Shown piece by piece: positions 21,901 to 56,356 of a stretch of DNA of 64,000 bases; position 1 is the stretch's first letter; every line of letters starts with the position of its first letter. The notes beneath the pieces were generated by a model. That model saw only the letters and a list, made by a program, of their open reading frames with translations, made no database searches and had not been told where the DNA came from. The position numbers were made by a program, and so were the translations under genes. The DNA lies in IMG/VR virus record IMGVR_UViG_3300021963_000021, positions 186,001 to 250,000 of that record, one strand, 5' to 3'.

Positions 21901-24180
21901 AAGTCCTACGTCTCTATAACATTTTGCTTCGTCATATTCTAGACCAAGAAATTCACCGTTGATCCAAGCGATTGTTTCTGATTGAATAAATGCTCGGTTC
22001 TGTTCTAGCAGTACCTTAGCGCCGAAATATTCAGTTTCGATTTTGTTAACAAGTGTGATACGATATAGTTCGCCGCCCAGCACAAAAGAGTTAGGTAACT
22101 GTGGTTCGCGAACTAGACCACCTATGATAATTTTTTCTGTACTAGTGCCTACGCGGCCTAGTAATATACCTTCTAGGTTTCCTGAGAAGCCGTCGACAAA
22201 CTGACCACCAGCAAATTGTTTTTCGTTGATGCTTCGTGAGAAGCTGGTACCTGTTTGGCAGTAAGGTGATTTAGATCCGATCTGACTGTTTGGATCAAGC
22301 ACCATCATGAATCCGCCATGACCTTGTACTGTTAGGTTTCTAACAATAGTAGCGTCACCGCATAGGAACACGTCCATCTCATTGTTGTCTAACGGTCGGC
22401 TTGAATAGTCTAATGGATCTGTTAGATAGTGATAACCGTATTCGTATTTGGCAGCACGTAGGCCGTCGATGATTTGATCTCTACGGAAATACAAACGTGC
22501 CCAAGGACTTTGGCTAACGCCTTGTTTTGGTCTAATAATAGCACGACGGAATTCACTACCACGTAATGAAACGTTAGGAGGAATTCTTAATGGAAAGTTT
22601 TCATAGTAAACACCAGATTCTATTTCAATAGTAATCTGTATGTCTTTAACTGGCTCACCGTATTCGATAATTTCATCGTTTTCAAATACGCCACTGATCA
22701 ATTCAATATCAAAAATCTCACGGCCAAACGAGTCTCTAGAACCGTTGTGGCTGATAATTTTAGCAACAGCACGTGAGTTTAGACCTCTTAGACATTGACC
22801 TTCACGAAGATCGTCATCAAAGTCTGATCCTTTGTTGTCTGTTTCTAACAATAGTCTTGGTAGGAATATCTCAACAGTAGGAATTACGTCGTAGCCCGAA
22901 CCACCTCTTGCGATAGTGACTTCTTTGATTTCACCGCTGATTTCTGTAACGTAGGCCTCTGTGCCGCCACCAGTTCCGCTGCTGGTAACAATAACCGAAG
23001 CGCCTGAACCATACCCGGAACCACTGTCTGTTACTATGATACTGGTAACTGTAAATCTAGCAGAGATGCTAGCAGTGCCACTACCGCTACCACCTACAAG
23101 ACCTATATTATCTAAATCATCTGGTAGTAGAGAATATACACCCTGTTGCTCAATGGCTACCTGTGTGATGCTTCCTGCGAAGTCCTTTGCTACAACACGT
23201 AGCAGAGCAGGGACAATAGCAGTACCGCCGCTGATACCAAGTGTATCGCCGATTTCGTATCCAGTACCGCCTTGAATGATAGAGATTAATGTATCTGGAT
23301 CGAGACCTAGTCTTGCTTCAGCAAGCGCACCTGCGCCAGACAACGGAGATTCAATAATATCAAACAATGTACAATTTTCTGTACCGTTATTGAATGTAAG
23401 TATTTTTTGGTAAGGTCCTAGTTCGATTGGAGCATCGTTGACTAGTTCTTCTGCTAATTCGCAGGCACGTTGTACACTTCTAAATGCTGTAGACCAAAAA
23501 CGACCTTTTGCGCTTTCTGGAATATCTGTGCGATAATCTTGACCATTAGTAGTAACGTAGATGTTTGTGATACTGCTGAAAGTCTTTGAGTCAACGTAGG
23601 ATTTTGTTGAAGCAACTAACCCGCCATAGTTAACGTCATCAGAGTCTACAGGGTTACGTGAAAGCACTAACGGTCCAGTCATTGTGCCCCAAGATGGACT
23701 AGTAGCACCTGTTTCTGGATTTACAGCATCAACACCTGCTAGGCTTAACTTACCGTCTACATAGCCTTTTGTAGCTGCGTCAGTGTCTACAGAACCTTCG
23801 GAAAGATTAGTAATACGTTTAAAGTTAGCATTAAGATTGGCAGCTAGTGTTGGGTTTCCATCGTTGATCAACGCAGATGCTAATGAGCTAAAACTAATAA
23901 CACCTGGAATAGTTTGGTTAATAACGATGGTAGCATCACCACGTAATTCTTTGAACAACAAGCGTTCGTTGTCGCCGTCGACAACTAACACTTTATTGGT
24001 ATCTGTTGTTAGGTACTGCCCAGGGGTATCGTCTAAGCCGATAAAGCTAAGAGCGCCTTCTTGCCCTAGTACAGCATATAATTCTTGGAAGTTGTCGTTT
24101 ACTTTTTTAAACGAATCACGTATACTATCACCGGTACCGTCGTTGCCTTCGACTCCGATGTTTATTTCTTTTCTTGACAT
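15946..24180 (-). CDS. giant (2744 aa) baseplate/tail-fibre protein
   Basis: gp9/10-like N-terminus NDGTGDSIRDSF.KVN.NF, four CxRD repeats, FCCH-like beta modules, C-terminal ADLAEWY chaperone-like domain. Confidence 0.7.
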   Translation of the reverse strand: MSRKEINIGVEGNDGTGDSIRDSFKKVNDNFQELYAVLGQEGALSFIGLDDTPGQYLTTDTNKVLVVDGDNERLLFKELRGDATIVINQTIPGVISFSSLASALINDGNPTLAANLNANFKRITNLSEGSVDTDAATKGYVDGKLSLAGVDAVNPETGATSPSWGTMTGPLVLSRNPVDSDDVNYGGLVASTKSYVDSKTFSSITNIYVTTNGQDYRTDIPESAKGRFWSTAFRSVQRACELAEELVNDAPIELGPYQKILTFNNGTENCTLFDIIESPLSGAGALAEARLGLDPDTLISIIQGGTGYEIGDTLGISGGTAIVPALLRVVAKDFAGSITQVAIEQQGVYSLLPDDLDNIGLVGGSGSGTASISARFTVTSIIVTDSGSGYGSGASVIVTSSGTGGGTEAYVTEISGEIKEVTIARGGSGYDVIPTVEIFLPRLLLETDNKGSDFDDDLREGQCLRGLNSRAVAKIISHNGSRDSFGREIFDIELISGVFENDEIIEYGEPVKDIQITIEIESGVYYENFPLRIPPNVSLRGSEFRRAIIRPKQGVSQSPWARLYFRRDQIIDGLRAAKYEYGYHYLTDPLDYSSRPLDNNEMDVFLCGDATIVRNLTVQGHGGFMMVLDPNSQIGSKSPYCQTGTSFSRSINEKQFAGGQFVDGFSGNLEGILLGRVGTSTEKIIIGGLVREPQLPNSFVLGGELYRITLVNKIETEYFGAKVLLEQNRAFIQSETIAWINGEFLGLEYDEAKCYRDVGLIVDAVVQDVLYGGYINSTQAGRLYFNNGATVVSGQVSQTADAIAKAKEIATYVINQDLWPAVGTVVQTTIPSITDGDLAETVLGNCFDIIEVIVRYGEKIYKAKSLLQSNKELIQSEVIEYINTVYPSLDYDEALCKRDTGFIVDAVSIDLFGDFNNSLRAGHAHFRQSGRVFPADQVDETIDAIEYGKYLMTQIVNNDPPSVLRTSKIFNPINDVSLVTNSISIPGHSFTNGSRVVYTAEGGTPMSATEGPLTDGGTYYIYVLDGNTVQLYRSLELVIAREKEVNTSIEINITSIGTGTGHKLAFQQATDIDLEAQDLLDANITDNINTAISYIQTLVQDGNTADVPGIYPQYECVLDTPFYGATAAAYDETYCSRDVGLIVNAVLYDMVLGSNFQSINAGRAYLRSYAVDVTTNQLTATLNAIIKAEEEAKKLLNPGTYSAARNTISDRMLLIRDIIENGTASVPAITYPTPTGMSGTDNKVKAKDILIANKAFIQAEIIAWINVQKAGNIAPFTSSDVIDGAACSRDVGYIIDAMCYDILYSGNSLTKNAAEAYYSALATGGTVILGQEAKTAAALARLKTVLGYVVVNDNTSWTKSVGNILNQNVALPAASASETTRTNTLTDVLIDYVADGDYDTATATVNPTITGQSATLQGARNLVVAEISNIQATVVDFVSNGRGKIIIGTAGNKSMLGNDFTQVNDMGYGIFAMNNGLIESVSMFTYYCYTAMYALNGAQIRALNGSSAHGFYGLKAEGADPNEVPDIVSLKFPLIQTASAYTNPGLDLTNAEGELTLYVSNYQYVPRSGSFVDIDHTGDPGGNTRLGLKTYVINTASTQDLPDGVCSLGLGLVTGQTGLAIDIPNGKPVIIRQNEELVIAGKEEIVATRPSTALIFNEDRTNTIRVLSFTQYEGLDAVTADVIVGSKDGYNYVNLPVLEGSTSFTVPTWSGNTGDDQIAVQTLSFVDSQRVVYPITGAAIYDGSTTGTGGHIFGYQDSVYEITGYDVNSADPNNPIGVLTFRNLTNPLAVTRTATVSAATKANPCVITTSTEQYLNAGRRIKFTGVTGMTQLNGNTYYVNPLTYSITATATVASTDNITVSSTAGLAAGQRIVFSGVVFGGIVANETYIIHTVGAGTIKITATTGGTVYGLSDASGSMAVVVTSDTNFALYTDSALTMTLDSTGFGVFSGGTSSLQVLGGLTYSVNASNGNLTLNSGIRAGAVGDITVNISTMRATGHDFLDIGTGSYADTNYPNNIFGPPANTPDKENQVIEKGKGRVFFVSTDQSGNFRVGDFFAVDQGTGQVTLDASINLRGIDSLRLRQGQEISEFSNDTSLGGSGLPDSQAVPTENATRTYIDRRLGLSHFGVRVTDGLIGPGYLALNGELSMKGNLDMDDNRVLNLPQPRQGIAGGEEAVPRFFMKMANLEDGPSGWRPETGSPTYGVSNSDILVFTGTGANFTNATVGGYLTFTRSGTTINATINDNTIVDADINYDAAIGQHKLALNTAKATTADGYSVTAYTANTTVSTTITAAGHGFSNNNVVVISGETTVTAINGDWKISNVTTDTFDIPANTSGGGVISGSAKVRLYGMLSGAKDTEFTIVNGFLALKDATSTTTGISRAKLAHIDPSVYDATDQTSLSGTVTKVLGRRGVPTTGTPTGAVVPIDARTIVEDADGLSRAEVPSIGVVVRSSTGTGTGKFTTVTYGSSNANNTIVQRGPSGEIAIGALTTTGVTSSGSITLTGGINAGDGVNFTVNSTTTSSLTRVLDDGATGSYYTLVRNGNGGSGIRLNDGSTSARQYTSYIAREHRFTDTGGLTNGVIDVKGGTLASTTTGGVLTNGYISGYWNVNAGSRMSATWADLAEWYASDKEYEPGTVVMFGGDSEITLCNEAATTRVAGVVTTNPAFVLNSEQQGTRTCVALQGRVPTKVVGKVKKGDLIVASGIAGIAISAGTVASPGTIIGKALEDYDSDRIGTIEIVVGRV

Positions 24181-45206: not shown

Positions 45207-45884
45207 TTATCTCCATAGTAAGTCAAAGTTACCTTTGAGAACAGTAGAACATTTTGATCTACAACCAGTTAAATGATCTTGAACAGAGTCATCTTGGAAT
45301 CGGTAAGTGCGGATTTTATCTCCACGCATACCTGATCCTACCTGTTGGCGTCTATCACTTGCTATACTATTATTATACGATCTTTTGAGTTCTAAGTCAA
45401 TGCGCTGTTGTAAAGTTGCCATAGCTTCGTTGTAGCTATTTTGGCGACTTCGGCATTCGGCTTTGGCTATTATACCTGTAGGAAGGTGTGTGATGCGGCA
45501 GCTATTTTGGTGCTTGTTCCGAAATTGTCCACCCGCTCCTGTACCGCTGTACCATTCGATCTTGAGATCGTTTTTGGTAACAGCAACAGAGTCAGGATCT
45601 GGAGACCCGTCTATGACAGCGACGGTAACAGTTGAAGTGTGGACACGACCTTTTCGTTCGGTCGGAGGCACTCGCTGGATACGATGACCACCGGGCTCAT
45701 TATCTAAGCCTGATAGATCTACACCCTCTACAAGTATCGAACACTCGCCAGGACGTACATCTATCAGGCGGGTAGTTCAACCCAGTTTATTTCCTAGTTT
45801 TTGGTAAGCGGTCGCGAGATCACTTACGAATAGTTTACTATCTTCGCCGCCTTCTGCGGCACGGATTTCAATAGTGCGTTTCAT
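45207..45884 (-). CDS. prfA-like: class I release factor homologue (RF1-type PxT, GGQ; lacks domain 1) with in-frame UGA at codon 36
   Basis: MKRTIEIRAAEGGEDSKLF...KLG*TTRLI...GGHRIQRVPPTERKGRVHTS...GAGGQ...KIRTY; TGA at 45779-45777, same frame on both sides. The ORF track shows only the downstream part. Confidence 0.85.
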
Positions 45885-46099
45885 GGTTTTCTCCTTTTAT
45901 ACCAACTGTACTTGTCACCATTTGGTAACAGACCGTTGTTAACAGAATCGGCGCCAAAGACGCCGACTATTTCCATACCGTCACCGTTTATGGTAACAAG
46001 TATGCCTAATTCTTTTGCGAAAGCCATTGCTTCCGATAGATCTTTTACTGCTTCCACACAACCTCTACCCGTTGTGTCATTCCATTTTACTTCATACAT
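45881..46099 (-). CDS. hypothetical protein
   Basis: 72-aa coupled ORF. Confidence 0.5.
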   Translation of the reverse strand: MYEVKWNDTTGRGCVEAVKDLSEAMAFAKELGILVTINGDGMEIVGVFGADSVNNGLLPNGDKYSWYKRRKP

Positions 46100-46110
46100 T
46101 CTTTATTTAT

Positions 46111-46188
46111 TGGCCTGCCCGGAGGGATTCGAACCCCCGACCCACAGCTTAGAAGGCTGTTGCTCTAATCCTGCTGAGCTACGGGCAG
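46111..46188 (-). tRNA. tRNA-Arg(TCT)
   Basis: Cloverleaf, loop CTTCTAA, CCA. Confidence 0.95.
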
Positions 46189-46193
46189 AAATT

Positions 46194-46269
46194 TGGAGCG
46201 GGAGACGAGTCTCGAACTCGCGACATCTTGCTTGGAAGGCAAGTGCTCTACCAACTGAGCTACTCCCGC
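46194..46269 (-). tRNA. tRNA-Gly(TCC)
   Basis: Loop CTTCCAA, CCA. Confidence 0.95.
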
Positions 46270-46275
46270 AATGTC

Positions 46276-46479
46276 TTAGGTTGGAAAATATTTTTCCATA
46301 ACTTCCAATTTGTCCATATACTCAGCAATCTGAGCGACTTCTTTTTCGATAGCATCCATAATATCACTGTGTTCGTGGATTGCTGTTGGGTTGTTCAGCA
46401 TCACTTCGACATTCATTTTATGTTTAGTGATGTGTGATCGAAAGTGTTCTTTCGATGCTTCAATGAGTTCTTTACGCAT
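46276..46479 (-). CDS. hypothetical protein (start MRKELIE)
   Basis: Coupled to the upstream ORF stop. Confidence 0.55.
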   Translation of the reverse strand: MRKELIEASKEHFRSHITKHKMNVEVMLNNPTAIHEHSDIMDAIEKEVAQIAEYMDKLEVMEKYFPT

Positions 46480-46736
46480 TATGAGTTCACCGTTTCGCTG
46501 TTTTGCTTCGAATTCCACTCTTGTTTGGCCTTTTGATAGGCGTCTTCGCTTAGGCCATGCCAACCAATACAGTCGCCTGTAGGACTACGACCACAACCGC
46601 AAGTACCTTTTTTCATATCTTCAACTTTTGGAGTCACTTTGTCTTTCCTAAAAATTAAATCGTAATTGTTGTTAAACGCTTTCGATGATGCTCTTGATTG
46701 TATAGCATCACCAGTTATATCGTTTCTTGCTACCAT
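46479..46736 (-). CDS. CDGSH-like Fe-S motif protein
   Basis: CGCGRSPTGDCIGWH (3Cys-1His). Confidence 0.55.
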   Translation of the reverse strand: MVARNDITGDAIQSRASSKAFNNNYDLIFRKDKVTPKVEDMKKGTCGCGRSPTGDCIGWHGLSEDAYQKAKQEWNSKQNSETVNS

Positions 46737-46752
46737 CTACATATCCTCAAAT

Positions 46753-46831
46753 TGGTCCGGGAAGTGGGATTCGAACTCACGATCTCCTGCTCCCAAAGCA
46801 GGCGCTTTAAGCCAGACTAAGCTACACCCGG
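46753..46831 (-). tRNA. tRNA-Pro(TGG)
   Basis: Loop TTTGGGA, CCA. Confidence 0.9.
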
Positions 46832-46835
46832 AAAT

Positions 46836-46909
46836 TGGTTGCGGGTCCTGGAATCGAACCAAGGACTAGAGCTTATGAGACTCTCGAGATACCCCTTCTC
46901 CAACCCGCT
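46836..46909 (-). tRNA. tRNA-Met(CAT), initiator-like
   Basis: Loop CTCATAA, unpaired 1:72, fMet-like D arm. Confidence 0.8.
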
Positions 46910-46916
46910 ATAAACC

Positions 46917-47492
46917 TTATAGGATTCCTTCTTTGGTCAGTGTTGCTACTGCTTCATCGCTTAGAGGAATCTCTGTCTTAATGTTAAGTTCAAGGACTTC
47001 GTCATTGATCTTTTGTTTCTGCTTGCGTAGATTGCTAAGTTCAGTCTTGAACTTGTCAATGTCTCCTGTGCTGAGCACAGAAGTGTCTACGGTATCACTG
47101 TAGCCGTAAATGCTACGACGACTAGTTTCGTTCTTGTCGTTGCGTATCTTATCCAACTTGCCGTTGATTACGACCAAGTCAGCGACTGGTGCGTGTCTGA
47201 CCATTGCTTCTAGCTGACTGATACGCTTGTCAATGAAAGCCGCACGAGTCAACAACAGGTCGATTCCGCTCTGGGCGTTTGCCGCACCTACTAGGCCGCG
47301 GATGTTATATTGCGCAGCCAACAACAGGCCACGACGCTGATCGTTTTCCAACAGCTTCTTGTTGGCAGCATCAATTTCGGCCTTTGCGTCCTGGAACTCA
47401 TTAAGCTGGACATCCAACTTAATATCGATATTTTTCAAAGCATCGCTGATGCTGTTCTGGACTACGTTTGCTTTACGAAGAGTGATGTTCAT
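46917..47492 (-). CDS. hypothetical coiled-coil protein
   Basis: 191 aa with its own promoter and AAGGA RBS. Confidence 0.65.
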   Translation of the reverse strand: MNITLRKANVVQNSISDALKNIDIKLDVQLNEFQDAKAEIDAANKKLLENDQRRGLLLAAQYNIRGLVGAANAQSGIDLLLTRAAFIDKRISQLEAMVRHAPVADLVVINGKLDKIRNDKNETSRRSIYGYSDTVDTSVLSTGDIDKFKTELSNLRKQKQKINDEVLELNIKTEIPLSDEAVATLTKEGIL

Positions 47493-47515
47493 GTGTTTTT
47501 CCTTATGATTTATCT

Positions 47516-47544
47516 ATTATACTGCCTTGACATGCTGTTGTCAA
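47516..47544 (-). promoter_or_regulatory. sigma70 promoter TTGACA-N17-TATAAT
   Basis: Perfect consensus. Confidence 0.8.
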
Positions 47545-47545
47545 C

Positions 47546-47816
47546 AAAAAAATGACGGATCGGTAAAAGGTCAAGTAATAGACCGGACAATAGACAGTGG
47601 AAGGTTTGTAATCTTCCTATGACAATGTACAAGGTACAAAGCACAGAGGTCTATATATTTCCGATTAACAAATGACATTCTATTAGGGATCGGATCACAT
47701 AAACACGGACAGTTTTCAAGACTGTTTGCGTTAAGTTCGGATTAGGCTTGGAGCCTAAGCCATTTTGTCCATCCTCATCTACCTTTTACTTCACCGGCTA
47801 GTTTTAATAAACTAGC
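47546..47816 (-). ncRNA. candidate structured ncRNA (about 270 nt)
   Basis: Nested long-range stems and several hairpins; no ORF on the minus strand. Confidence 0.5.
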
Positions 47817-47821
47817 AAAAC

Positions 47822-47897
47822 TGGTGCCGGTTGTCGGATTCGAACTGACCACATCCGCCTTACAAGAGCGGCGCTCTACCTAATGAGCTAAACCGGC
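47822..47897 (-). tRNA. tRNA-Thr(TGT)
   Basis: Loop CTTGTAA, CCA. Confidence 0.95.
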
Positions 47898-47920
47898 ATA
47901 AAACTATATATCAAACAACT

Positions 47921-48012
47921 TGGCGGAGATAGTTGGATTCGAACCAACGGTAGAGTTTAACCCCTACGACGGTTTAGCAAACCGCTGCCTTCAGCCACTC
48001 AGCCATATCTCC
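47921..48012 (-). tRNA. tRNA-Ser(GCT)
   Basis: Loop TTGCTAA, long variable arm. Confidence 0.95.
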
Positions 48013-48016
48013 GTAT

Positions 48017-48106
48017 TGGCGGAAGCGGTGAGATTCGAACTCACGGAACATTTCTGTTCGTCGGTTTTCAAGACCGGTGCAATCAGCCAGACTCTGCCAC
48101 ACTTCC
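48017..48106 (-). tRNA. tRNA-Ser(TGA)
   Basis: Loop CTTGAAA, long variable arm. Confidence 0.95.
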
Positions 48107-48111
48107 ATAAA

Positions 48112-48187
48112 TGGTAGGTCCTGACAGTCTCGAACTGCCGACATCCGCCGTGTAAAGGCGGCGCTCTACCAACTGAGCTAAGGACCC
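48112..48187 (-). tRNA. tRNA-Val(TAC)
   Basis: Loop TTTACAC, CCA. Confidence 0.95.
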
Positions 48188-48269
48188 AAAAGATCTATTC
48201 TGAAACACACTGGCTGTTGCTTGTCATTGTCTTTAACTACCTCTCGGTGGCGGTAGACCAATGTGTTTT

Positions 48270-49165
48270 AGAATAGTGTTAAGACTGAGATTACATCTTA
48301 ACCATAAGCACCTCTAGCATTACCGTACACCTTGCGAGCATACGTTCTCTAGATATCCACTGAGCCCTATTGCTAGGTATCCCAGTCTGCTTACAGTATC
48401 GCCGTTTTAAGTCAGGCAGTAGACTTGACGCCATATGCTATTCTACACCATCTATCCCGTTAACCTTGCGAGCTATTCGAGTGCGCTAACACTCTACGAA
48501 ACTTCCAGTATAAACTAATGTCACCTTGCGAGCTTCATTAGACTTGATTGTGTTACCACTCAAGTATTAGATACTTTTCACATATGACCGAGGCAGTCTT
48601 TGCGTTTTTGTTTAATGGCTGGAGTTGAACCAGCAACATTCTGTTTAATAGACAGACGATCTACCATTGATCTACATTGCAACCTACCGTGATGAGCTAC
48701 CTCTGTTGCTGTATACTCTTTTGGAATACACAATACAACTCACCACATACCTTTCCTCTCGCGGAGTAATCAGTGATGTTTCACGACCAGTGTCCTGCGT
48801 CAAAACAGTCCACCGCCCATTTACATTGCGCTAAAGCCCTTAGGAGCGACCCCTCGGACAATAACACTACCCTTTCTCATACCAGTTAATAAGTTGGTTT
48901 TGTATGGAAGTCAGCACCACCTGTTACTTTTCACGCACCCTGGTTCCCTTGCGGGCCAGTCGATACGCATTCTTCCCCATACACTTACTTGGCTGTTACA
49001 TCCACCGGTTTTGTCAGTGAACGCATCCTCACGGATGTGAGCAGGCTTGTTTACACGAACCATTGCTGGCGCTAGTATGTAGGCATTCTAGCTTTGGGTC
49101 GATCGCTCGACTTATTCTTCGTAGACGGCGGACCGCCTACAGGATGATAAACCACCCTAGAATTT
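48270..49165 (-). ncRNA. large structured ncRNA, GOLLD-like
   Basis: About 0.9 kb with no long ORF inside a tRNA array; repeated GCAA-capped hairpins and long-range stems. Confidence 0.55.
48611..48681 (-). pseudogene. tRNA-like domain (anticodon ATT) embedded in the large ncRNA
   Basis: Perfect D, anticodon and T arms; two acceptor mismatches; no CCA. Confidence 0.7.
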
Positions 49166-49251
49166 TTAAACCATATAAAAACACACTCACGGACATGGCT
49201 TGTTGGATGCAGCCTGCCTAACCGAACCAACTTCGGCAGTGTGTTTTTATA

Positions 49252-49335
49252 TGGTGCCCCAACCGAGACTTGAACTCGGACGCACTAGGCACTGGCTTCT
49301 AAGACCAGCGTGTCTACCAATTCCACCATCGGGGC
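49252..49335 (-). tRNA. tRNA-Leu(TAG)
   Basis: Loop CTTAGAA, long variable arm. Confidence 0.95.
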
Positions 49336-49393
49336 AATGTTTGTCTAACAATGTTAAAGAGCGTTACGCTGTTTTGTTTAACAGCATATGTAT

Positions 49394-49422
49394 ATTATAT
49401 CTTCTAACTGCCGCTGTGTCAA
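49394..49422 (-). promoter_or_regulatory. internal sigma70 promoter TTGACA-N17-TATAAT
   Basis: Perfect consensus upstream of tRNA-Leu(TAG) and the large ncRNA. Confidence 0.8.
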
Positions 49423-49452
49423 CACATTCTGGACATATTAGAAAATATTTTT

Positions 49453-49526
49453 TGGTGCCCAGACCAAGAATTGAACTTGGAATAATCGCTTATCAAGCGA
49501 CCGTTATACCATTTAACTATCCGGGC
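49453..49526 (-). tRNA. tRNA-Ile(GAT)
   Basis: Loop TTGATAA, CCA. Confidence 0.93.
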
Positions 49527-49535
49527 ATATTGAAT

Positions 49536-49750
49536 TTGTTGTAGTAGTGCCACCATCGTTATTGGCACCATTCACCTGGATTAACAAAGCCCGGGCAGGA
49601 CTCGGTACGTCACTTGGGATACTAGTCCAGTTAGCAACCAATCTGCGCCGATCTTCCGATCAGCCGGGAGTTGAACCCGTCCCCTTCTACTATTTCGGTA
49701 GTTCGAACTTACCTAGATAGCGTGACATTCTCTTGCTGACACTACAACAA
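49536..49750 (-). ncRNA. candidate structured ncRNA (215 nt)
   Basis: 10-bp terminal stem, two T-loop-like hairpins, GGAA tetraloop. Confidence 0.55.
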
Positions 49751-49754
49751 AACT

Positions 49755-49829
49755 TGGCTCCCCAGGGTGGGATCGAACCACCGACAAACGGATTAACAGT
49801 CCGCTACTCTACCTCTGAGCTACTAGGGA
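49755..49829 (-). tRNA. tRNA-Asn(GTT)
   Basis: Loop CTGTTAA. Confidence 0.95.
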
Positions 49830-49835
49830 ATAAAT

Positions 49836-49910
49836 TGGTGGAGGATAGCGGAATCGAACCGCTGACTCAAGCGTGCAAGGCTAGTGTTTTCCCAATTAGA
49901 CTAATCCCCC
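49836..49910 (-). tRNA. tRNA-Ala(TGC)
   Basis: Loop CTTGCAC. Confidence 0.93.
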
Positions 49911-49914
49911 AAAT

Positions 49915-49990
49915 TGGCGCCTCGTAGGGGAGTCGAACCCCTGTGTTCCGCTAGACAGGCGGGCATAATAGACCGTTATATGAACGAGGC
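49915..49990 (-). tRNA. tRNA-Asp(GTC)
   Basis: Loop CTGTCTA. Confidence 0.92.
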
Positions 49991-50000
49991 AAAACTTGTT

Positions 50001-50076
50001 TGGTAGCAGTAGTTGGACTCGAACCAACGATAAACACCGTATGAAGGTGCCGCATTAGCCGCTATGCTATACTGCC
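50001..50076 (-). tRNA. tRNA(CAT), elongator Met or Ile2
   Basis: Loop TTCATAC, paired acceptor. Confidence 0.85.
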
Positions 50077-50080
50077 ATAT

Positions 50081-50225
50081 CCATTTAGAAGTAACACAGT
50101 TTACTATTCTCTTGCTACCGAATGTGTAGTACCTTACAGGTCTACGTTACTAGTATCATCGGCTTTCCGCTTCGAACAAGGTTAGGTCTGATCATGACCC
50201 GACGAGCTGTGTTACTACTAAATGG
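50081..50225 (-). ncRNA. candidate structured ncRNA (145 nt)
   Basis: 18-bp terminal stem with one mismatch; multibranch interior. Confidence 0.55.
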
Positions 50226-50228
50226 TAA

Positions 50229-50305
50229 TGGTGTGCCCTCTGGGATTCGAACCCAGGACCCTCTGATTAAAAGTCAGATGCTCTAACCTACTGAGCTAAG
50301 GGCAC
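50229..50305 (-). tRNA. tRNA-Lys(TTT)
   Basis: Loop CTTTTAA. Confidence 0.95.
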
Positions 50306-50360
50306 AATCGTTTACCAGATTTACCATCATCTCCCATGGTAATTTCCTCCTTAAAAAACT

Positions 50361-50436
<76 letters not shown>

Positions 50437-50442
50437 ATTATA

Positions 50443-50518
50443 TGGTACACGGTACGGGAATCGAACCCGTCTTTCCGCCTTGAAAGGGCAGCGTCCTCAA
50501 CCGATAGACGAACCGTGC
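50443..50518 (-). tRNA. tRNA-Glu(TTC)
   Basis: Loop CTTTCAA. Confidence 0.95.
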
Positions 50519-50546
50519 GTAAAAAATTTTCAATTGTCAAAGAACG

Positions 50547-50623
50547 TGGAGCACAGGGTGGGACTCGAACCCACGAATCAACAGTTTTGCAGACTGCGCC
50601 ATTGGCCTCTCTGGTACCTGTGC
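50547..50623 (-). tRNA. tRNA-Cys(GCA)
   Basis: Loop CTGCAAA, U73. Confidence 0.95.
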
Positions 50624-50637
50624 GTTAAAGTCTATCA

Positions 50638-50666
50638 AGTATATGATAAATCAAACAGCTTGTCAA
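50638..50666 (-). promoter_or_regulatory. internal sigma70 promoter TTGACA-N17-TATACT
   Basis: Near-consensus, upstream of tRNA-Cys. Confidence 0.75.
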
Positions 50667-50751
50667 CTACTATTTTAGGTTTTTGTCGATGATGATCATC
50701 AAAACCGCTAACATGATTAGAACTGCCAATGCCCCATGTGAGTCTCCTTGT

Positions 50752-50825
50752 TGGTGCTCTAGCCAAGAATTGAACTTGAAATTCAGTCTTACCAAGACTG
50801 TGTTATACCATTTAACTACAAGAGC
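50752..50825 (-). tRNA. tRNA-Thr(GGT)
   Basis: Loop TTGGTAA. Confidence 0.93.
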
Positions 50826-50826
50826 A

Positions 50827-50905
50827 TGGTACCCCTGCTCAGATTTGAACTGAGAACAACTTCTCCTTTTGAGAGAGACGACTTTACCAATTTGTCCACA
50901 GGGGC
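50827..50905 (-). tRNA. tRNA-Leu(CAA), short variable arm
   Basis: Loop CTCAAAA; variable region of only about 7 nt. Confidence 0.8.
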
Positions 50906-50911
50906 ATACTT

Positions 50912-50987
50912 TGGTGCTGCCTCCTGGGATCGAACCAGGTTCCTCGGTTCTTCAGACCGGTGCTATGACCACATCAGCTAAAGCAGC
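50912..50987 (-). tRNA. tRNA-Phe(GAA)
   Basis: Loop CTGAAGA. Confidence 0.93.
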
Positions 50988-50997
50988 ATTTAATCTT

Positions 50998-51072
50998 TGG
51001 TGGATCTTGTAGGATTTGAACCTACGACCAACAGCGTGTCGAGCTGCTACTCTACCACTGAGCTAAAGATCC
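50998..51072 (-). tRNA. tRNA-Val(GAC)
   Basis: Loop TCGACAC. Confidence 0.9.
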
Positions 51073-51073
51073 T

Positions 51074-51147
51074 TGGGGTGAAACCGGGAATCGAACCCTG
51101 TCTACCTGTTTCACAGACAGGTGTGCGACCACTACACTAGTAACACC
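51074..51147 (-). tRNA. tRNA-His(GTG)
   Basis: Loop CTGTGAA, G-1:C73; some stem mismatches. Confidence 0.85.
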
Positions 51148-51152
51148 ATTAT

Positions 51153-51229
51153 TGGCCGGCCCGGAGAGACTCGAACTCCCAACCTCTAGTTTCGAAGACT
51201 AGCACTCTAATCCATTGAGTTACGGACCG
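51153..51229 (-). tRNA. tRNA-Arg(TCG)
   Basis: Loop CTTCGAA. Confidence 0.93.
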
Positions 51230-51235
51230 ATAACT

Positions 51236-51309
51236 TGGCTGGGGATGATGGATTCGAACCACCACAGACGGAATCAAAATCCGTAGTCCTACCATTAGAC
51301 GAATCCCCA
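51236..51309 (-). tRNA. tRNA-Gln(TTG)
   Basis: Loop TTTTGAT. Confidence 0.93.
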
Positions 51310-51313
51310 ATAT

Positions 51314-51387
51314 TGGCACCGGACCAGAGACTCGAACTCCGACGAACGGTTTTGGAGACCGTCATGCTGCCATTACATCAGCCCGAT
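51314..51387 (-). tRNA. tRNA-Trp(CCA)
   Basis: Loop CTCCAAA; D stem ATGT/GCAT gives U11:A24. Confidence 0.93.
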
Positions 51388-51388
51388 A

Positions 51389-51742
51389 TTATTTGATTGT
51401 GTCGTACCGAGTATCTTCGGTTTCGATAAAGTTGACCATTCCAACAGAGATATGATATCCTTCTGTTTTCATAGCTTGATATGCTTTTTGATACACGTCT
51501 GATTCTAAGAGATTCTTTTGAAAATCTCTAGCTTTAAACATGTCTTTAGAAAAGAAGTAGACGTTTTCTACTTGTGTTGTAGCATCCCAATCCCATGACT
51601 GCTTATCTTCTATAAGCCCTTGTTCTACACAGTCTTTTAGAAACGCAACGAATTCTAAGGAGATATCTTCTCTAAAGTTGATATCATCTTGGGTCTGAAA
51701 TTCAGCTCCGTAGTAAATTTGCTGTATTTGTGTAGCTATCAT
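51389..51742 (-). CDS. hypothetical protein inside the tRNA array
   Basis: 117 aa, AAGGA RBS, TAAATA motif upstream. Confidence 0.55.
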   Translation of the reverse strand: MIATQIQQIYYGAEFQTQDDINFREDISLEFVAFLKDCVEQGLIEDKQSWDWDATTQVENVYFFSKDMFKARDFQKNLLESDVYQKAYQAMKTEGYHISVGMVNFIETEDTRYDTIK

Positions 51743-51768
51743 GATTGGGATCCTTTTAGCTATTTATC

Positions 51769-51855
51769 TGGTGGAGGAAGTAAGATTCGAACCTACTAGT
51801 CCCTAAGAAAACAGATTTACAGTCTGCCGCACCCCTCCAACTGTGCCGTTCCTCC
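51769..51855 (-). tRNA. tRNA-Tyr(GTA)
   Basis: Loop CTGTAAA, long variable arm. Confidence 0.95.
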
Positions 51856-52100
51856 ATAATAAGTTACGCACTCATAGTCTATGACTACCTGTCCTTCCAG
51901 TCAACGGAAGTAGAATGCGTGTATTGAAATGCTCTCCGCTACGCTGTCATGCCCGTTCCAAGGGTCAAGAGAAAGCATTTTAATACGCTACCATTTATAC
52001 TCCTGCGTTTTCGCCACAGTTTCATCCGGTAGGCCGCCCGTTTGCTGGATGTTTAACGTGCCCAGCGAGGTCCTCGTTACCTCTTTTTCACACGTAGTAC

Positions 52101-52137
52101 AAAATGAAAAACCCCAGGGTTTCTAATCCTGGGGTCC
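52101..52137 (-). terminator. attenuator-type intrinsic terminator ahead of the tRNA array
   Basis: ACCCCAGG-ATTAGAAAC-CCTGGGGT followed by TTTTCATTTT. Confidence 0.85.
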
Positions 52138-52159
52138 TTTGGGTAAGTTTGTGTTGCTT

Positions 52160-52297
52160 TTACGCTACACGATCCTCCCGGGACCCCTGAATCTCTGGTG
52201 TACGATCATTTGATAGACTAATCGCAGACCAATAAGAGGGCATAAAGCCGCCTTGTTTGGCTGAGCAATATTGTCTATGAAGTGATGTCGTTTTCAT
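52160..52297 (-). CDS. putative leader peptide (45 aa, contains all 20 amino acids)
   Basis: Not in ORF track; MKTTSLHRQYCSAKQGGFMPSYWSAISLSNDRTPEIQGSREDRVA*; AAGGA upstream; contains the antiterminator strand 52192-52181. Confidence 0.65.
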   Translation of the reverse strand: MKTTSLHRQYCSAKQGGFMPSYWSAISLSNDRTPEIQGSREDRVA

Positions 52298-52348
52298 TTG
52301 ATTCAAAATTTCCTTAAAAGTTACACGTTATCTCTAACGCATGTCCTT

Positions 52349-52459
52349 ATTGTACATTTATTTAGCCTGCTTGTCAACCCCTATTTTTCTTTCTGGAAAA
52401 ATTTCTGGTCTTCTTACAAACTATGCTTCTATTATATGTTCTTTTTATTTATGTGTCAA
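52349..52459 (-). promoter_or_regulatory. tandem sigma70 promoters
   Basis: TTGACA-N17-TATAAT (52459-52431) and TTGACA-N17-TACAAT (52377-52349). Confidence 0.85.
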
Positions 52460-52488
52460 TTAAAATATACCCAGATTATGTGGCATTT

Positions 52489-53061
52489 TTACAACATTTG
52501 GCTAACATCTTCGTTGAACCTTATGGTAGCAACGACCCTTAGTGTGTCATAGGGATTGTGTACACCATGCGGAACATTGATGCGTAGTATAGCAGGTTTT
52601 GTTAGTTCAAGTCTATGGACTTCTCTTACCGAACTGTGTGAGTTGCCTCCGCAGTCATAGACTGGATAGAACACATCTGGATCGTCATTAACCTTTTCGT
52701 AGAACAGTGTTGTGGTGCCTTCGCAGTGTTCTAAAGGAAAATTCATAGCAAAGGTTGGTTCGTACAAAGTCCAATCTTCGTCTTTGGCATCAATGTGAAT
52801 GAATACTGACTCAGGATTAGCAGGGTCTGTGATTTCCATACTGTTCTTTGGAATACAGAAAAAGATCAATTGTCTAATAGTAAGATTAAAGTTGTCCTTG
52901 AGCATCTTGACCAGGTCAGGAAGTTCTCTTTCGACTTCATCAGGGAAGTGGCACCACCAAAGAGTGTCGGTGTTTCCTTTGGTATTGCGAAAATCAATCA
53001 ATGCCTGTCTATGTTTTTCAAAGTCAGGTATGTTTATAAATTTTGAATATTTCATTCCCAA
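52489..53061 (-). CDS. 2OG-Fe(II) oxygenase/cupin-like protein
   Basis: IHID...NFP...HGV...R.VATIRF. Confidence 0.55.
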   Translation of the reverse strand: MGMKYSKFINIPDFEKHRQALIDFRNTKGNTDTLWWCHFPDEVERELPDLVKMLKDNFNLTIRQLIFFCIPKNSMEITDPANPESVFIHIDAKDEDWTLYEPTFAMNFPLEHCEGTTTLFYEKVNDDPDVFYPVYDCGGNSHSSVREVHRLELTKPAILRINVPHGVHNPYDTLRVVATIRFNEDVSQML

Positions 53062-54188
53062 ACGTGTGCGCCTTTTTTAGGTACAGCAAAATTCAAATAA
53101 GTTTCAATTTTAGCTAGATCTTCTTTGGTTTTCAACGAGCATAGTTCGTTAGCAAAGTGTAATTCAACACCCAAATCTAATGCTAGTTGTAGAAGTTCAC
53201 TTCTACGCTCTACATCGTCGGTTAAACAGTACATGCTACACAGCACAATACCATCAGGGCGTTCTTTTATGTAGTGTTCTAGACCAGGTTGCCAGTCCAT
53301 ATGTTCGTTTTCAAACTCATAGCTGTTGTAACTGATCTTGTTTTTGACACAATATGGTTCTATAATGGCACGCTGCATTGGTAAGGGGATGTCTTTTGAA
53401 AACTTAGAATTCCAGCCAGCATAGGTAATAAAGCTCTTGCCAGTGTAGTCACCGGTCTGTGTTACTTCGTAGTCGCCAGGCAAGCGCATAAAGCCCCCAG
53501 GCAGTCGACGACCCCATTCTTCGCCTTCGATAAGGATACGCATATCCATACTAACACGAGTGTAGCCTTCTTCGTTGTTGACATTTCCGTGTATGTGTTC
53601 TTGGAAGAACAAATGACTCTGACCAGGTTTGAGTGTAACTGGCCATGCGTGTTTTAAACACTCATCTTCAAACTGTTCGAGACTCCACTTTTCAGCTAGT
53701 ACACGTTTAGTGACTTCTCTACTGATATCCAGATCCATCATCCACATGGTGTTAGTGCCTTTAGCTTCTGTAAAAGGTGTCCAAATGGTTCGGCAACCAC
53801 GACCATTGCCAACAAAGATACCTTGGTGGAAGGCCAACCTACGACCAACTTTGGCCTGCTGTGGAATCACTACACGCAGAGTTCCTTGGCGTTGTATCAT
53901 GTAACGTTTGTTTTGTATACGTTGAGGTACAATACTTTGAGCAAACTCGTCAAACAGTTCCATAAAGTCTCTGCGTGAACAGGCATTTTGAACATGCTGG
54001 CTGACTTTAACAATCTCGGGAGGAGATAAAACTTCGTGTAGTGTCTCTAATTCTTTGACCTGTGGTGCGACTTCTTGTACGATCGACAGGGCCCATGCCG
54101 GCCAGTTGTACTTGTTTACATCATAGTTAAGGGTTTTATTATCCCAATGTTCCTGTAAAGGTGTTAAAGTTGCCATTCTATTCTCCAT
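53052..54188 (-). CDS. 2OG-Fe(II) oxygenase fused to a small alpha/beta domain
   Basis: FHQG, LKPGQ..LF..EH.HGN.NN.EGYTRVSMD.R; C-terminal DGIVL.S domain. Confidence 0.6.
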   Translation of the reverse strand: MENRMATLTPLQEHWDNKTLNYDVNKYNWPAWALSIVQEVAPQVKELETLHEVLSPPEIVKVSQHVQNACSRRDFMELFDEFAQSIVPQRIQNKRYMIQRQGTLRVVIPQQAKVGRRLAFHQGIFVGNGRGCRTIWTPFTEAKGTNTMWMMDLDISREVTKRVLAEKWSLEQFEDECLKHAWPVTLKPGQSHLFFQEHIHGNVNNEEGYTRVSMDMRILIEGEEWGRRLPGGFMRLPGDYEVTQTGDYTGKSFITYAGWNSKFSKDIPLPMQRAIIEPYCVKNKISYNSYEFENEHMDWQPGLEHYIKERPDGIVLCSMYCLTDDVERRSELLQLALDLGVELHFANELCSLKTKEDLAKIETYLNFAVPKKGAHVWE

Positions 54189-54200
54189 ATATGCTAATTA

Positions 54201-55301
54201 TCACAAGGAATCACCTTGGACAAAATTTTTAATTTCAGATACTGCTGCTTGATTTAGTAAAGTCGATTCTCCGCACTGGTGAGCGCACCTATCTAATCTA
54301 TTACAATTAGTCCAACTGTCTTTTATCTCGTTGAATATTTTACTGTTGACGATGTCTGATAGGGCTGTGTGATTTAAATCAATGCTTTTTAGCCCACCAT
54401 TGTTTTCTATCATTTCAAATAGTTTAGCTCTGTCTGGGTGAAGCTCGGGTTCGTAGCCATAGAAACGATCCAACAGCCATCCGCAGGGCAACACATAGCC
54501 TTCTGCTGACACACAGACTAGTCCAGTTTTCTGTGCCATACAATTTATGTTAGTGTTCTTAAGGTACGAATCGTAATCGCCAAATTTCTCTACGATTTTG
54601 TCATAGACATCATAGCCTCTGTTGAGGTATTTTTTATCAGTGGCAGGTTTAAGCCATCTTATGATTTTGTTATCCTTGTCGTGTACAGGACTTGCGTCTA
54701 TTTTTTTATGTGTTTTATCAATAAATCTAGAAGTGAACTTGACTACGAATCCTTTGAATCCTAATTCAGTACTGAGTTTTCTTGCTGCGTTGACTTGATG
54801 TTCATTGTGCTGGAATACGATATAACTCCATACAGCGTTGCCGCCTGCTTGTATAAAGTTGCGAGCGTTGTCCATAATTTTATCAAAGTCTGTGCCTATC
54901 CTGTAGAGATGATTAGTGTCTTCGAGACCGTCTACGCCAAAAAACACAGTATCCTGCGGTCTAAGAGTCTTGGCTAATTCTTTCCACCAAGCACTACTGC
55001 GAAGGCTTCCGTTAGTTCTTATGGTTATCTGTGCCTGAGACACAGAGTGAAAGTGTTTAACGATATCTATTAGATCAGGATGTACACAGGGATCACCGTA
55101 GGTGCCACACAATCTTATTTCTTTCATGTGTGCTAGTTCTTTTTCTTTGAACTTTTCTCCAATCCATTCAAGGCTGAGATCCACTAACGGTAGTGTAGGC
55201 CAAGTTTTTCCTCCATAGTAATTTCTAATACATTGAGGACAAGACGCATTACACCTTGTAGTGAGTTCAAATTCTATCTGTGTTAGTTTATCGTAGAACA
55301 T
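54201..55301 (-). CDS. radical SAM protein with C-terminal SPASM-like domain (start MFYDKL)
   Basis: CNASCPQC, GTYGDP, RTNG, DGL, C-terminal Cys cluster. Confidence 0.9.
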   Translation of the reverse strand: MFYDKLTQIEFELTTRCNASCPQCIRNYYGGKTWPTLPLVDLSLEWIGEKFKEKELAHMKEIRLCGTYGDPCVHPDLIDIVKHFHSVSQAQITIRTNGSLRSSAWWKELAKTLRPQDTVFFGVDGLEDTNHLYRIGTDFDKIMDNARNFIQAGGNAVWSYIVFQHNEHQVNAARKLSTELGFKGFVVKFTSRFIDKTHKKIDASPVHDKDNKIIRWLKPATDKKYLNRGYDVYDKIVEKFGDYDSYLKNTNINCMAQKTGLVCVSAEGYVLPCGWLLDRFYGYEPELHPDRAKLFEMIENNGGLKSIDLNHTALSDIVNSKIFNEIKDSWTNCNRLDRCAHQCGESTLLNQAAVSEIKNFVQGDSL

Positions 55302-56356
55302 TAACTGTAGTCTAGTAATTCGCCACGACGTCTTAGGTCTAATGTGGTACAATGAAAGCCGCCTGACAAAGTACTGGCGTGCCGCATAGGCAATGGAATC
55401 ACATCAAAGCCGCGTGATTCTAACATTTTAATCAACGGCAACTGCTCTTTGCCTACCATTATTGTTTTTGGATCTACACTTAGTACATTCATGCCTATGA
55501 ATCTACTGGTAGTTGCTAGTCCACCCGGGCACCATTTGCTCACAGGTATTTCTACAACATCGTCAAAATATATTTTGTCCCACTTTTCAAATATTTTAGG
55601 ACAGTTATTGGGATTTACCCTAGAGGAGTTTAATAACACAGTGTGATCGTTCAGTGGAATGATGGTACTGTCAAAGTGTCCGAAACTATAAATGTGTTCA
55701 GCCATGTGTATTCTATAGCCCAATGGTTCTAACAGATTCTTTAACCACTTCATACCCCATTTATTTCCTGTGTTAGAAATTTGAAACAGAATGTCTTTGC
55801 CTAATCTCACACAGTTAGGAGCATCAAACACTGGCTCTAAATCTCTCAGTGTTGGTTTTGATAGGTCTTCAAAGGTATAACTCTCATCAGGCAGTATAGG
55901 TTTAGGTGCCGACACCCAAGCACATCCGTCTTTGATTGCGTCTAACATGATATCGTGATAGGCCCTTGTTTCAAAATATCTAGCTCGCATACAACTAGGA
56001 GTTTCTATCATGATGTTGCCTAATGGCAGTAACAGATCTCTGGGGCACCAAGTATGATACCCAGAAGTCTTCCAATCAGGAGTGCCGAATTCAGCATCGT
56101 GATTTATGTCTTTAGGTCTATGTACAATAACTCCTAGAGACTTTAGTGTGTCAGACATGACTTCTAGATCTTCATTAGCTTCGTCTATCAGTGCTTTTGG
56201 AAATGGTCCTTCTAGTCCTTTGATCTGTTCTTGTGAATATTCAGTGTAGACCATGCTGTGTGTACTGATGTCAATGTTGGCCATGCGAGCACCAGTGGCT
56301 GTGCCGACAATAATTTCCTCTAACGGATCCCAATGATTGTGACTGGATATTTTCAT
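55301..56356 (-). CDS. amidinotransferase (glycine/inosamine-phosphate, StrB1-like)
   Basis: WDPLEEIIVG, CPRD, FDAPN, HFDST, GGFHC.T.D. Confidence 0.9.
   Translation of the reverse strand: MKISSHNHWDPLEEIIVGTATGARMANIDISTHSMVYTEYSQEQIKGLEGPFPKALIDEANEDLEVMSDTLKSLGVIVHRPKDINHDAEFGTPDWKTSGYHTWCPRDLLLPLGNIMIETPSCMRARYFETRAYHDIMLDAIKDGCAWVSAPKPILPDESYTFEDLSKPTLRDLEPVFDAPNCVRLGKDILFQISNTGNKWGMKWLKNLLEPLGYRIHMAEHIYSFGHFDSTIIPLNDHTVLLNSSRVNPNNCPKIFEKWDKIYFDDVVEIPVSKWCPGGLATTSRFIGMNVLSVDPKTIMVGKEQLPLIKMLESRGFDVIPLPMRHASTLSGGFHCTTLDLRRRGELLDYS

Follow-up and report, generated by a model that had tools for sequence, protein, structure and literature searches.

We analyzed a 64,000-nucleotide stretch (hereafter the window; positions 186,001 to 250,000 of IMG/VR record IMGVR_UViG_3300021963_000021) of a 363,943-bp contig from a freshwater jumbo phage. 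On the minus strand, two promoters matching the sigma-70 consensus lead into a 45-codon open reading frame (ORF) that contains all 20 amino acids, followed by an intrinsic terminator, a structured RNA and an array of tRNA genes (Table 1). Nineteen of the amino acids are present by codon 35 of the leader ORF, whereas Val appears only at codon 44. The terminator begins 22 nt after the stop codon and was missed by a simple terminator scan only because the loop limit of that scan is 8 nt. An initial annotation of this sequence had described tandem promoters, the all-20 ORF, the terminator and a competing antiterminator, and each of these elements is present where that annotation placed it. The 251-nt leader RNA folds well below shuffled controls (−75.2 kcal/mol, z = −4.4).

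Table 1. Features of the leader region and the tRNA array (window coordinates)
Coordinates	Strand	Feature	Details and occurrence in relatives
52431..52459	−	Upstream promoter P1	TTGACA-17-TATAAT, 12/12 consensus positions; conserved in the closest relative (locus L002); a second upstream promoter also occurs in the leaderless subgroup
52349..52377	−	Leader promoter P2	TTGACA-17-TACAAT, 11/12; predicted transcription start near 52342; an 11-12/12 promoter at the same place in 55 of 56 relatives scored
52323..52340	−	5'-terminal hairpin of the leader transcript	Seen in the minimum-energy fold; relatives keep a hairpin here with different stem sequences (read by eye)
52160..52297	−	Leader ORF	ATG at 52297, 45 codons, TAA at 52162-52160; peptide motifs GGFMPSYW (codons 16-23) and NDRTPE (codons 30-35)
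52227..52261	−	Mid-ORF hairpin over the codons for AKQGGFMPSYW	RNAalifold (alignment columns 138-171); apical AGGC/GCCU stem persists in divergent leaders whose peptide differs here
52181..52187	−	Region 2, 5' arm of the antiterminator	GGGGUCC, inside codons 37-39
52141..52179	−	P-stop, two-tier hairpin between regions 2 and 3	Contains the stop codon
52131..52137	−	Region 3, partner of region 2	GGACCCC; shares five bases with the 5' arm of the terminator
52101..52135	−	Intrinsic terminator	Stem ACCCCAGG (52135-52128) with CCUGGGGU (52118-52111), 9-nt loop, U-tract 52111-52101
51919..52093	−	Conserved structured RNA of unknown function	Directly downstream of the terminator
51876..51904	−	Degenerate promoter just before tRNA-Tyr	9/12; relatives often have a 12/12 promoter here
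46111..51855	−	tRNA array	28 tRNA calls covering all 20 amino acids, with an embedded GOLLD RNA and internal promoters at 50666, 49422 and 47544

Relatives of the leader

We next asked whether related phages carry the same element. Nucleotide (blastn) and translated (tblastn) searches of an annotated phage collection with the region and with a neighboring gene found no match. Relatives of the upstream 378-aa gene gave 80 loci, but only one of these (L002) is syntenic with a tRNA array. L002 keeps both promoters, the terminator and the ORF (75% identity, with two in-frame 3-nt indels), and its peptide also has all 20 amino acids. The peptide itself proved the productive query. Searches with the peptide alignment yielded 32 viral loci, 80 of 124 metagenomic loci and 435 protein clusters at 90% identity, all of which are unnamed or labeled 'hypothetical protein'. 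Searching with a motif of the downstream RNA recovered about 25 further loci, whose leaders have lost the core peptide motif but keep the same layout. In total, about 180 distinct relatives were recovered from viral and metagenomic data, whereas no relative was found in 185,579 bacterial and archaeal genomes.

The element does not correspond to a described family. Profile searches with the 45-aa product gave no Pfam or PHROG hit at E up to 0.1. A covariance-model scan (cmscan) of positions 51850-52480 against Rfam at E up to 10 returned only one chance-level match (16 bits against a gathering score of 60), and a scan of 45500-53500 found only tRNAs, GOLLD and sub-threshold, chance-level matches to plastid UTR models lying over tRNA genes. 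No Rfam leader or T-box model thus matches the region. Full-text literature searches likewise found no description of this element, though they surfaced the whiB7 precedent discussed below.

Conservation of the ORF and of its amino-acid content

The initial annotation had named an untranslated or unconserved ORF as grounds for abandoning its reading, and the comparative evidence argues against both possibilities, although translation itself was not measured. The reading frame is maintained through many indels. Changes within the GGFMPSYW and NDRTPE codons are mostly synonymous (TCT/TCA/TCC, CCC/CCA/CCG/CCT, CGT/CGC, GAG/GAA). In the window the ORF begins about 45 nt after the predicted transcription start, but about seven relatives place the −10 box 6-8 nt before the ATG, which implies a leaderless mRNA starting at that codon.

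Conserved amino-acid diversity in related phages had also been proposed beforehand as a check, and we find that completeness is itself conserved. All 20 amino acids are present in 60 of 65 distinct peptides from viral and metagenomic loci, 13 of 18 divergent ones and 85 of 114 from the protein database, in leaders of 44-51 residues. By comparison, about 0.9% of 45-residue windows of this phage's own proteins are complete (0.9-1.9% for windows of 45-50 residues), and the leader is the only complete one among 79 ATG ORFs of 40-55 aa in the window. Completeness is a strong tendency and not a rule, as 8-25% of relatives are incomplete, nearly all lacking just one residue, usually Cys or Val. Cys occupies 13 alignment columns and His 10, yet only 2 and 0 of 65 peptides, respectively, lack them. 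Shuffling residues within columns, which keeps the composition of the family, leaves 28-41% of sequences complete, against 92% observed. Among 13 representatives below 60% identity, 12 are complete, against a shuffled mean of 3.7, and 0 of 5000 shuffles reach 12. Relatedness inflates such tests, but the repeated relocation of rare residues is hard to explain without selection for their presence.

In 56 of 65 peptides, all 20 amino acids lie in the 36-42 codons upstream of region 2, against a background of 0.13-0.55% for 36-42-aa windows. This is where an attenuation model needs them. Glu, however, often lies only 1-4 codons before region 2 and, in the window, Val lies after it, so that stalls at these codons should not give read-through in the simple model. 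The leader contains no runs of regulatory codons; most amino acids are present one to three times.

Two alternative RNA structures

Codons 36-39 (52192-52181) pair with 52137-52126 at 11 of 12 positions, counting one G.U, as the initial annotation had noted. Only the 7-bp core formed by regions 2 and 3 is conserved in relatives, and the 4-bp extension is not conserved even in the closest one. RNAalifold on 27 leaders chose the antiterminator over the terminator. On a MAFFT alignment of 68 leaders, 97.3% of antiterminator cells pair; the outer pair is GC in 38, AU in 21 and GU in 9, with none unpaired, and four of seven pairs show changes on both sides. Further variants (GGGUUCC/GGAACCC, AGGGUUC/GAACCCU, GGGGUUC/GAACCCC, GGGGUUUC/GAAACCCC and two wobble cases) all stay complementary. 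Region 2 is read as 'GS' in some leaders and 'RVR' in others, so it is conserved as RNA.

A GC-rich stem of 8-12 bp followed by a U-tract lies 21-32 nt after the stop codon in all 66-68 leaders, and this terminator stem covaries too (CCCCAGG/CCUGGGG, CCCUGG/CCAGGG, CCCUAGUUA/UAACUAGGG). The covariation of antiterminator and terminator that had been suggested in advance as a test is thus observed for both helices. Where region 3 carries U instead of C, region 2 usually switches to A, whereas the 3' arm of the terminator (region 4) mostly stays G; the antiterminator pair is therefore at least as constrained as the terminator pair. The two states are mutually exclusive and nearly balanced: forced-terminator and forced-antiterminator energies differ by −0.9 kcal/mol on average, and the minimum-energy fold is the antiterminator in 40 leaders and the terminator in 26.

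In 66 of 66 leaders, the 39-54 nt between regions 2 and 3 fold into a two-tier hairpin that we call P-stop (mean −10.2 kcal/mol, z = −3.4). It begins 0-4 nt after region 2, ends 2-4 nt before region 3 and holds the stop codon in its 5' arm or loop. The apical stems differ between relatives but still pair.

Two other predicted pairings were rejected. RNAalifold proposed that CCAG in the TPE codons pairs with the terminator's 3' arm, but the ORF motif stays the same when that arm changes. In some sequences, RNAfold pairs region 2 with a local GGAC just downstream when the terminator is forced, which would act as an anti-antiterminator. This pairing is not kept when region 2 changes (loci L113, L169, L324 and L340), and the GGAG there instead pairs with CUUC/CUCC as the base of P-stop.

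Genes and RNA downstream of the leader

Wherever enough sequence is available, the leader heads a same-strand array of roughly 11-37 tRNAs. The array is not gated by this terminator alone. In 22 of 56 relatives, a promoter matching at least 11 of 12 consensus positions lies between the terminator and the first tRNA, often ending about 10 nt before tRNA-Tyr, and the window keeps a remnant of such a promoter and has further consensus promoters inside the array. The immediate cargo in most relatives is a 54-60-aa ORF, which has no family match and has been lost from the window. It is followed by an RNA of about 175-190 nt, which in the window directly follows the terminator. An alignment of 36 sequences supports five helices with invariant loop sequences and compensatory changes at 24 of 37 predicted pairs, and no Rfam family matches this RNA.

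Leader content and tRNA repertoire

A comparison of leaders and arrays suggested a link between the two. Among arrays with at least 6.5 kb of downstream sequence, 22 of 23 distinct Cys-containing leaders head arrays with tRNA-Cys. The three Cys-less leaders that could be examined come from three subclades and all head arrays without it, one of which lacks only Cys of the 20 amino acids. The hypergeometric probability, calculated by hand and without phylogenetic correction, is 4/2600 = 0.0015. The relation is not a strict mirror. Leaders lacking Val or Leu still head arrays with tRNA-Val or tRNA-Leu, and several arrays lack tRNA-Tyr although Tyr sits in the conserved core.

We also asked whether leader codons are preferentially those read by the phage's own tRNAs. 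In the 11 loci covered, no enrichment was seen (0.72-0.94 decodable, against 0.74-0.91 for other phage genes), a sample that leaves the question undecided. The conserved GCC, CCC and TCT codons are never covered by phage tRNAs under standard wobble rules.

Related attenuation systems

The closest precedent is the whiB7 5' leader of mycobacteria, in which a uORF is followed by a Rho-independent terminator and a competing antiterminator (PMC10274678). Efficient uORF translation gives termination and stalled translation gives read-through. The system senses many amino-acid, tRNA and synthetase deficiencies, and the composition of the uORF decides which ones: removing the Trp or His codons abolishes the response to that starvation, and the M. 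smegmatis uORF has every amino acid except Cys. The phage element is analogous and not homologous, as there is no sequence similarity and the downstream genes are tRNAs and a structured RNA in a phage, rather than a transcription factor for stress and drug resistance in a cell. The whiB7 uORFs vary in length and composition, are alanine-rich and often lack several amino acids, whereas the phage leaders are compact (44-51 codons) and appear selected for completeness.

Classical amino-acid operon attenuators (trpL, hisL, thrL, ilvL, leuL and pheL) likewise have a short translated leader ORF near the promoter and a mutually exclusive antiterminator and terminator, with the outcome set by where the ribosome is relative to RNA polymerase. 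Those leaders carry runs of one to three cognate codons and control the matching biosynthetic genes. In the phage leaders, the stop codon lies between regions 2 and 3, inside a scaffold hairpin, and there is no conserved 1:2 'protector' pairing. Antibiotic-responsive attenuators (such as the leaders of erm, vmlR and bmrCD-type resistance genes) also use a short leader ORF to report general ribosome stalling through alternative RNA structures, a comparison that we did not test, but these leaders are very short, sense drug-bound ribosomes at specific peptide contexts and control resistance genes, and there is no evidence that they are selected for amino-acid completeness. T-box riboswitches are cis-acting transcription attenuators that also report tRNA charging, but bind one specific uncharged tRNA directly and need no translation.

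Proposed mechanism

We consider the element most likely to be a ribosome-mediated transcription attenuator whose leader ORF has been selected to contain a codon for every amino acid, and assign this reading a probability of roughly 0.6. In this view, a very strong constitutive promoter makes a leader RNA of about 240 nt. P-stop would fold first and place regions 2 and 3 side by side, so that, if no ribosome has reached the end of the ORF, the antiterminator could zip up as soon as region 3 emerges and before region 4 is made. Transcription would then continue into the small ORF (in relatives), the structured RNA and the tRNA array. A pioneering ribosome that keeps within roughly 75-90 nt of the polymerase would instead cross region 2 and melt P-stop before the 3' arm of the terminator is made, leaving region 3 to pair with region 4 and transcription to stop at 52101. 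Because the roughly 36-42 codons upstream of region 2 include all 20 amino acids, a shortage of any charged tRNA would delay the ribosome and raise read-through.

The comparative data establish the conserved ORF with its signatures of translation, the conserved completeness, the covarying alternative helices and the association with tRNA arrays; that termination occurs, that it depends on translation, its polarity and the physiological trigger are inferred, and there are no expression data of any kind. Some features fit the model less easily. A ribosome parked at the stop codon does not directly cover region 2 (14-23 nt upstream) or region 3 (21-32 nt downstream), so blocking must come from melting P-stop and from steric hindrance, which is plausible but unproven. 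With no ribosome at all the design predicts read-through, and there is no conserved anti-antiterminator. The GGFMPSYW and NDRTPE motifs are under amino-acid-level selection that a pure codon sensor does not explain. The mid-ORF hairpin over the first motif may be an RNA polymerase pause or coupling element, and the second motif, which always lies within a ribosome's reach of region 2, could speculatively be a programmed pause that parks the ribosome there.

The observation in the initial annotation is therefore confirmed. Its interpretation, an all-amino-acid attenuator controlling the tRNA operon, is supported in part: the attenuator reading is well supported by comparative evidence but untested experimentally, the claim that the element alone gates the tRNA operon is overstated, broad amino-acid sensing is not unprecedented given whiB7, and the suggested link to host anticodon nucleases is speculation. 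What differs from known leader-peptide attenuators is the selection for a complete amino-acid set in a minimal ORF, the phage tRNA-array context and the new RNA cargo.

Alternative explanations

Four other explanations were considered, all of which seem unlikely. The least unlikely is that the ORF is an ordinary gene for a small phage protein with its own strong promoter and terminator, which acts in trans (for example, on the ribosome or on tRNA metabolism), with completeness a side effect and the region 2/region 3 pairing only tuning terminator efficiency or RNA stability. Purifying selection on the two motifs, the conservation of 435 protein clusters and the separate promoters of many arrays are consistent with this view. 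However, the C-terminal third is conserved as RNA in two reading frames and not as peptide, and the core motif decays in divergent members (GFAPSIW, GVIACSW, GFNASNW) while completeness and the RNA helices persist. The relocation and retention of rare residues, the balance and covariation of the two helices and the lack of a Pfam or PHROG match also count against it.

A slightly weaker candidate is a nascent-peptide arrest sensor of the TnaC or SecM kind, in which the W...DRTPE segment stalls the ribosome over region 2 in response to a small molecule or to a state of the translation machinery, thereby setting termination, and the all-20 composition is secondary. W23, D31, R32 and P34 are conserved at the amino-acid level, and the Pro codon is always within about 5-16 nt of region 2, so a ribosome with Pro in its P site would cover region 2. 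The spacing of W, D and P loosely recalls TnaC, a resemblance that we did not test. Nothing in our analyses shows arrest, the motif is not invariant in divergent members, and this model does not explain conserved completeness or the joint loss of the Cys codon and tRNA-Cys.

It is also doubtful that the terminated ~240-nt transcript is itself the product, as an abundant and possibly dual-function small RNA that acts in trans, with read-through incidental. The consensus promoters and strong terminator should make this highly structured RNA very abundant, and the attenuator-derived rnTrpL, which acts in trans, provides a precedent (PMC6614838). This reading does not explain ORF maintenance, synonymous substitution, completeness or the conservation of an antiterminator of equal energy, and no target was identified. 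Finally, a reversed polarity, in which efficient translation promotes read-through so that the downstream RNAs are made only when translation works, could draw on the failure of a ribosome at the stop codon to cover region 2 or 3 and on the local GGAC pairing, but is the least likely, as that pairing is not conserved, P-stop places regions 2 and 3 side by side whenever no ribosome is present, and the stop codon lies at least 21 nt before the terminator stem, so a ribosome cannot melt the terminator.

Implications for phage tRNA arrays

How phages regulate their tRNA arrays is essentially unknown, and why they carry near-complete tRNA sets is still debated. A more far-reaching and tentative possibility, which we consider somewhat less likely than not, is that the leader is a purpose-built sensor of the complete amino-acid alphabet that, together with the array it heads, forms a homeostat for tRNA supply, its codon content co-evolving with the tRNA repertoire such that the Cys codon disappears where tRNA-Cys is absent. 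Any single depleted charged tRNA (from host shut-off, tRNA-cleaving defenses or starvation) would then switch on extra transcription of a full phage tRNA set and of a previously undescribed structured RNA. If so, this is the first attenuator in which completeness of the amino-acid set is itself the selected trait.

Our analyses thus identify a large, unannotated family and, downstream of its proposed switch, a new and strongly covarying structured RNA. If the element is a compact cis-acting device that measures whether translation of all 20 amino acids keeps pace with transcription, it would provide a ready-made, roughly 250-nt genetically encoded reporter of charged-tRNA sufficiency and a natural experiment on transcription-translation coupling. 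It would also show selection acting on the amino-acid inventory of a peptide rather than on its sequence, and would link phage tRNA expression to the state of the host's translation machinery.

RNAs and a small ORF downstream of the leader terminator

A structured RNA of about 175-190 nt and of unknown function lies directly after the leader terminator and is conserved in nearly all relatives. This RNA has five helices and invariant loops (AACGAGG, GCACUUAAAACAU, AACGGGCGG, GGAUG, GUAUUAAAG...CUUUAAUAC), and 24 of its 37 predicted pairs show compensatory changes, though no Rfam family matches it. In most relatives, a small ORF of 54-60 aa begins 15-20 nt after the leader terminator, with an N-terminus like MEKIDY.KLNE, a conserved KLIQDKFERA segment and no credible Pfam match. 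The window has lost this ORF and retains only remnants of it.

Coordinates of features in the window and in related loci (L-numbers)
Feature	Sequence	Position	Strand
Structured RNA (alignment A6)	window	51919-52093	-
Small ORF	L002	7553-7717	+
Small ORF remnants	window	near 52095-52080	
GOLLD RNA	window	48282-48746	-
ARAGORN call tRNA-Asn(att)	window	48610-48681	
Internal promoter, 11/12	window	50666	-
Internal promoter, 12/12	window	49422	-
Internal promoter, 12/12	window	47544	-
Long tRNA-Ile(tat)	L086	5124-5215	
Long tRNA-Ile(tat)	L088	4853-4944	
Long tRNA-Ile(tat)	L090	4208-4299	
tmRNA-like gene	L345	208-640	+
Radical-SAM domain protein	window	54201-55352	-
Tail-fibre-like protein	window	15946-24180	-

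Other genes and leader promoters

A radical-SAM domain protein is encoded just upstream of the leader region, and the window also encodes a 2744-aa tail-fibre-like protein, whereas most other proteins tested have no PHROG match. In a related phage contig (L345), ARAGORN calls a tmRNA-like gene with a tag peptide about 9.4 kb upstream of the leader. In a subgroup of relatives (L086, L094, L182, L194, L196, L202, L204 and L215; about 40 nt before the leader ATG), the -10 box ends 6-8 nt before the leader ATG, which implies a leaderless or nearly leaderless mRNA, and a second consensus promoter lies about 60 nt further upstream.

Organization of the tRNA array

A full-length GOLLD RNA (Rfam accession RF02032, 211.6 bits) sits inside the tRNA array, and one ARAGORN call, tRNA-Asn(att), lies within it. 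Unusually long tRNA-Ile(tat) calls of 90-92 nt recur in the related arrays, three examples of which are tabulated. We further identified three more sigma-70 promoters, at or near consensus, inside the window's array. The array is therefore transcribed in several units.
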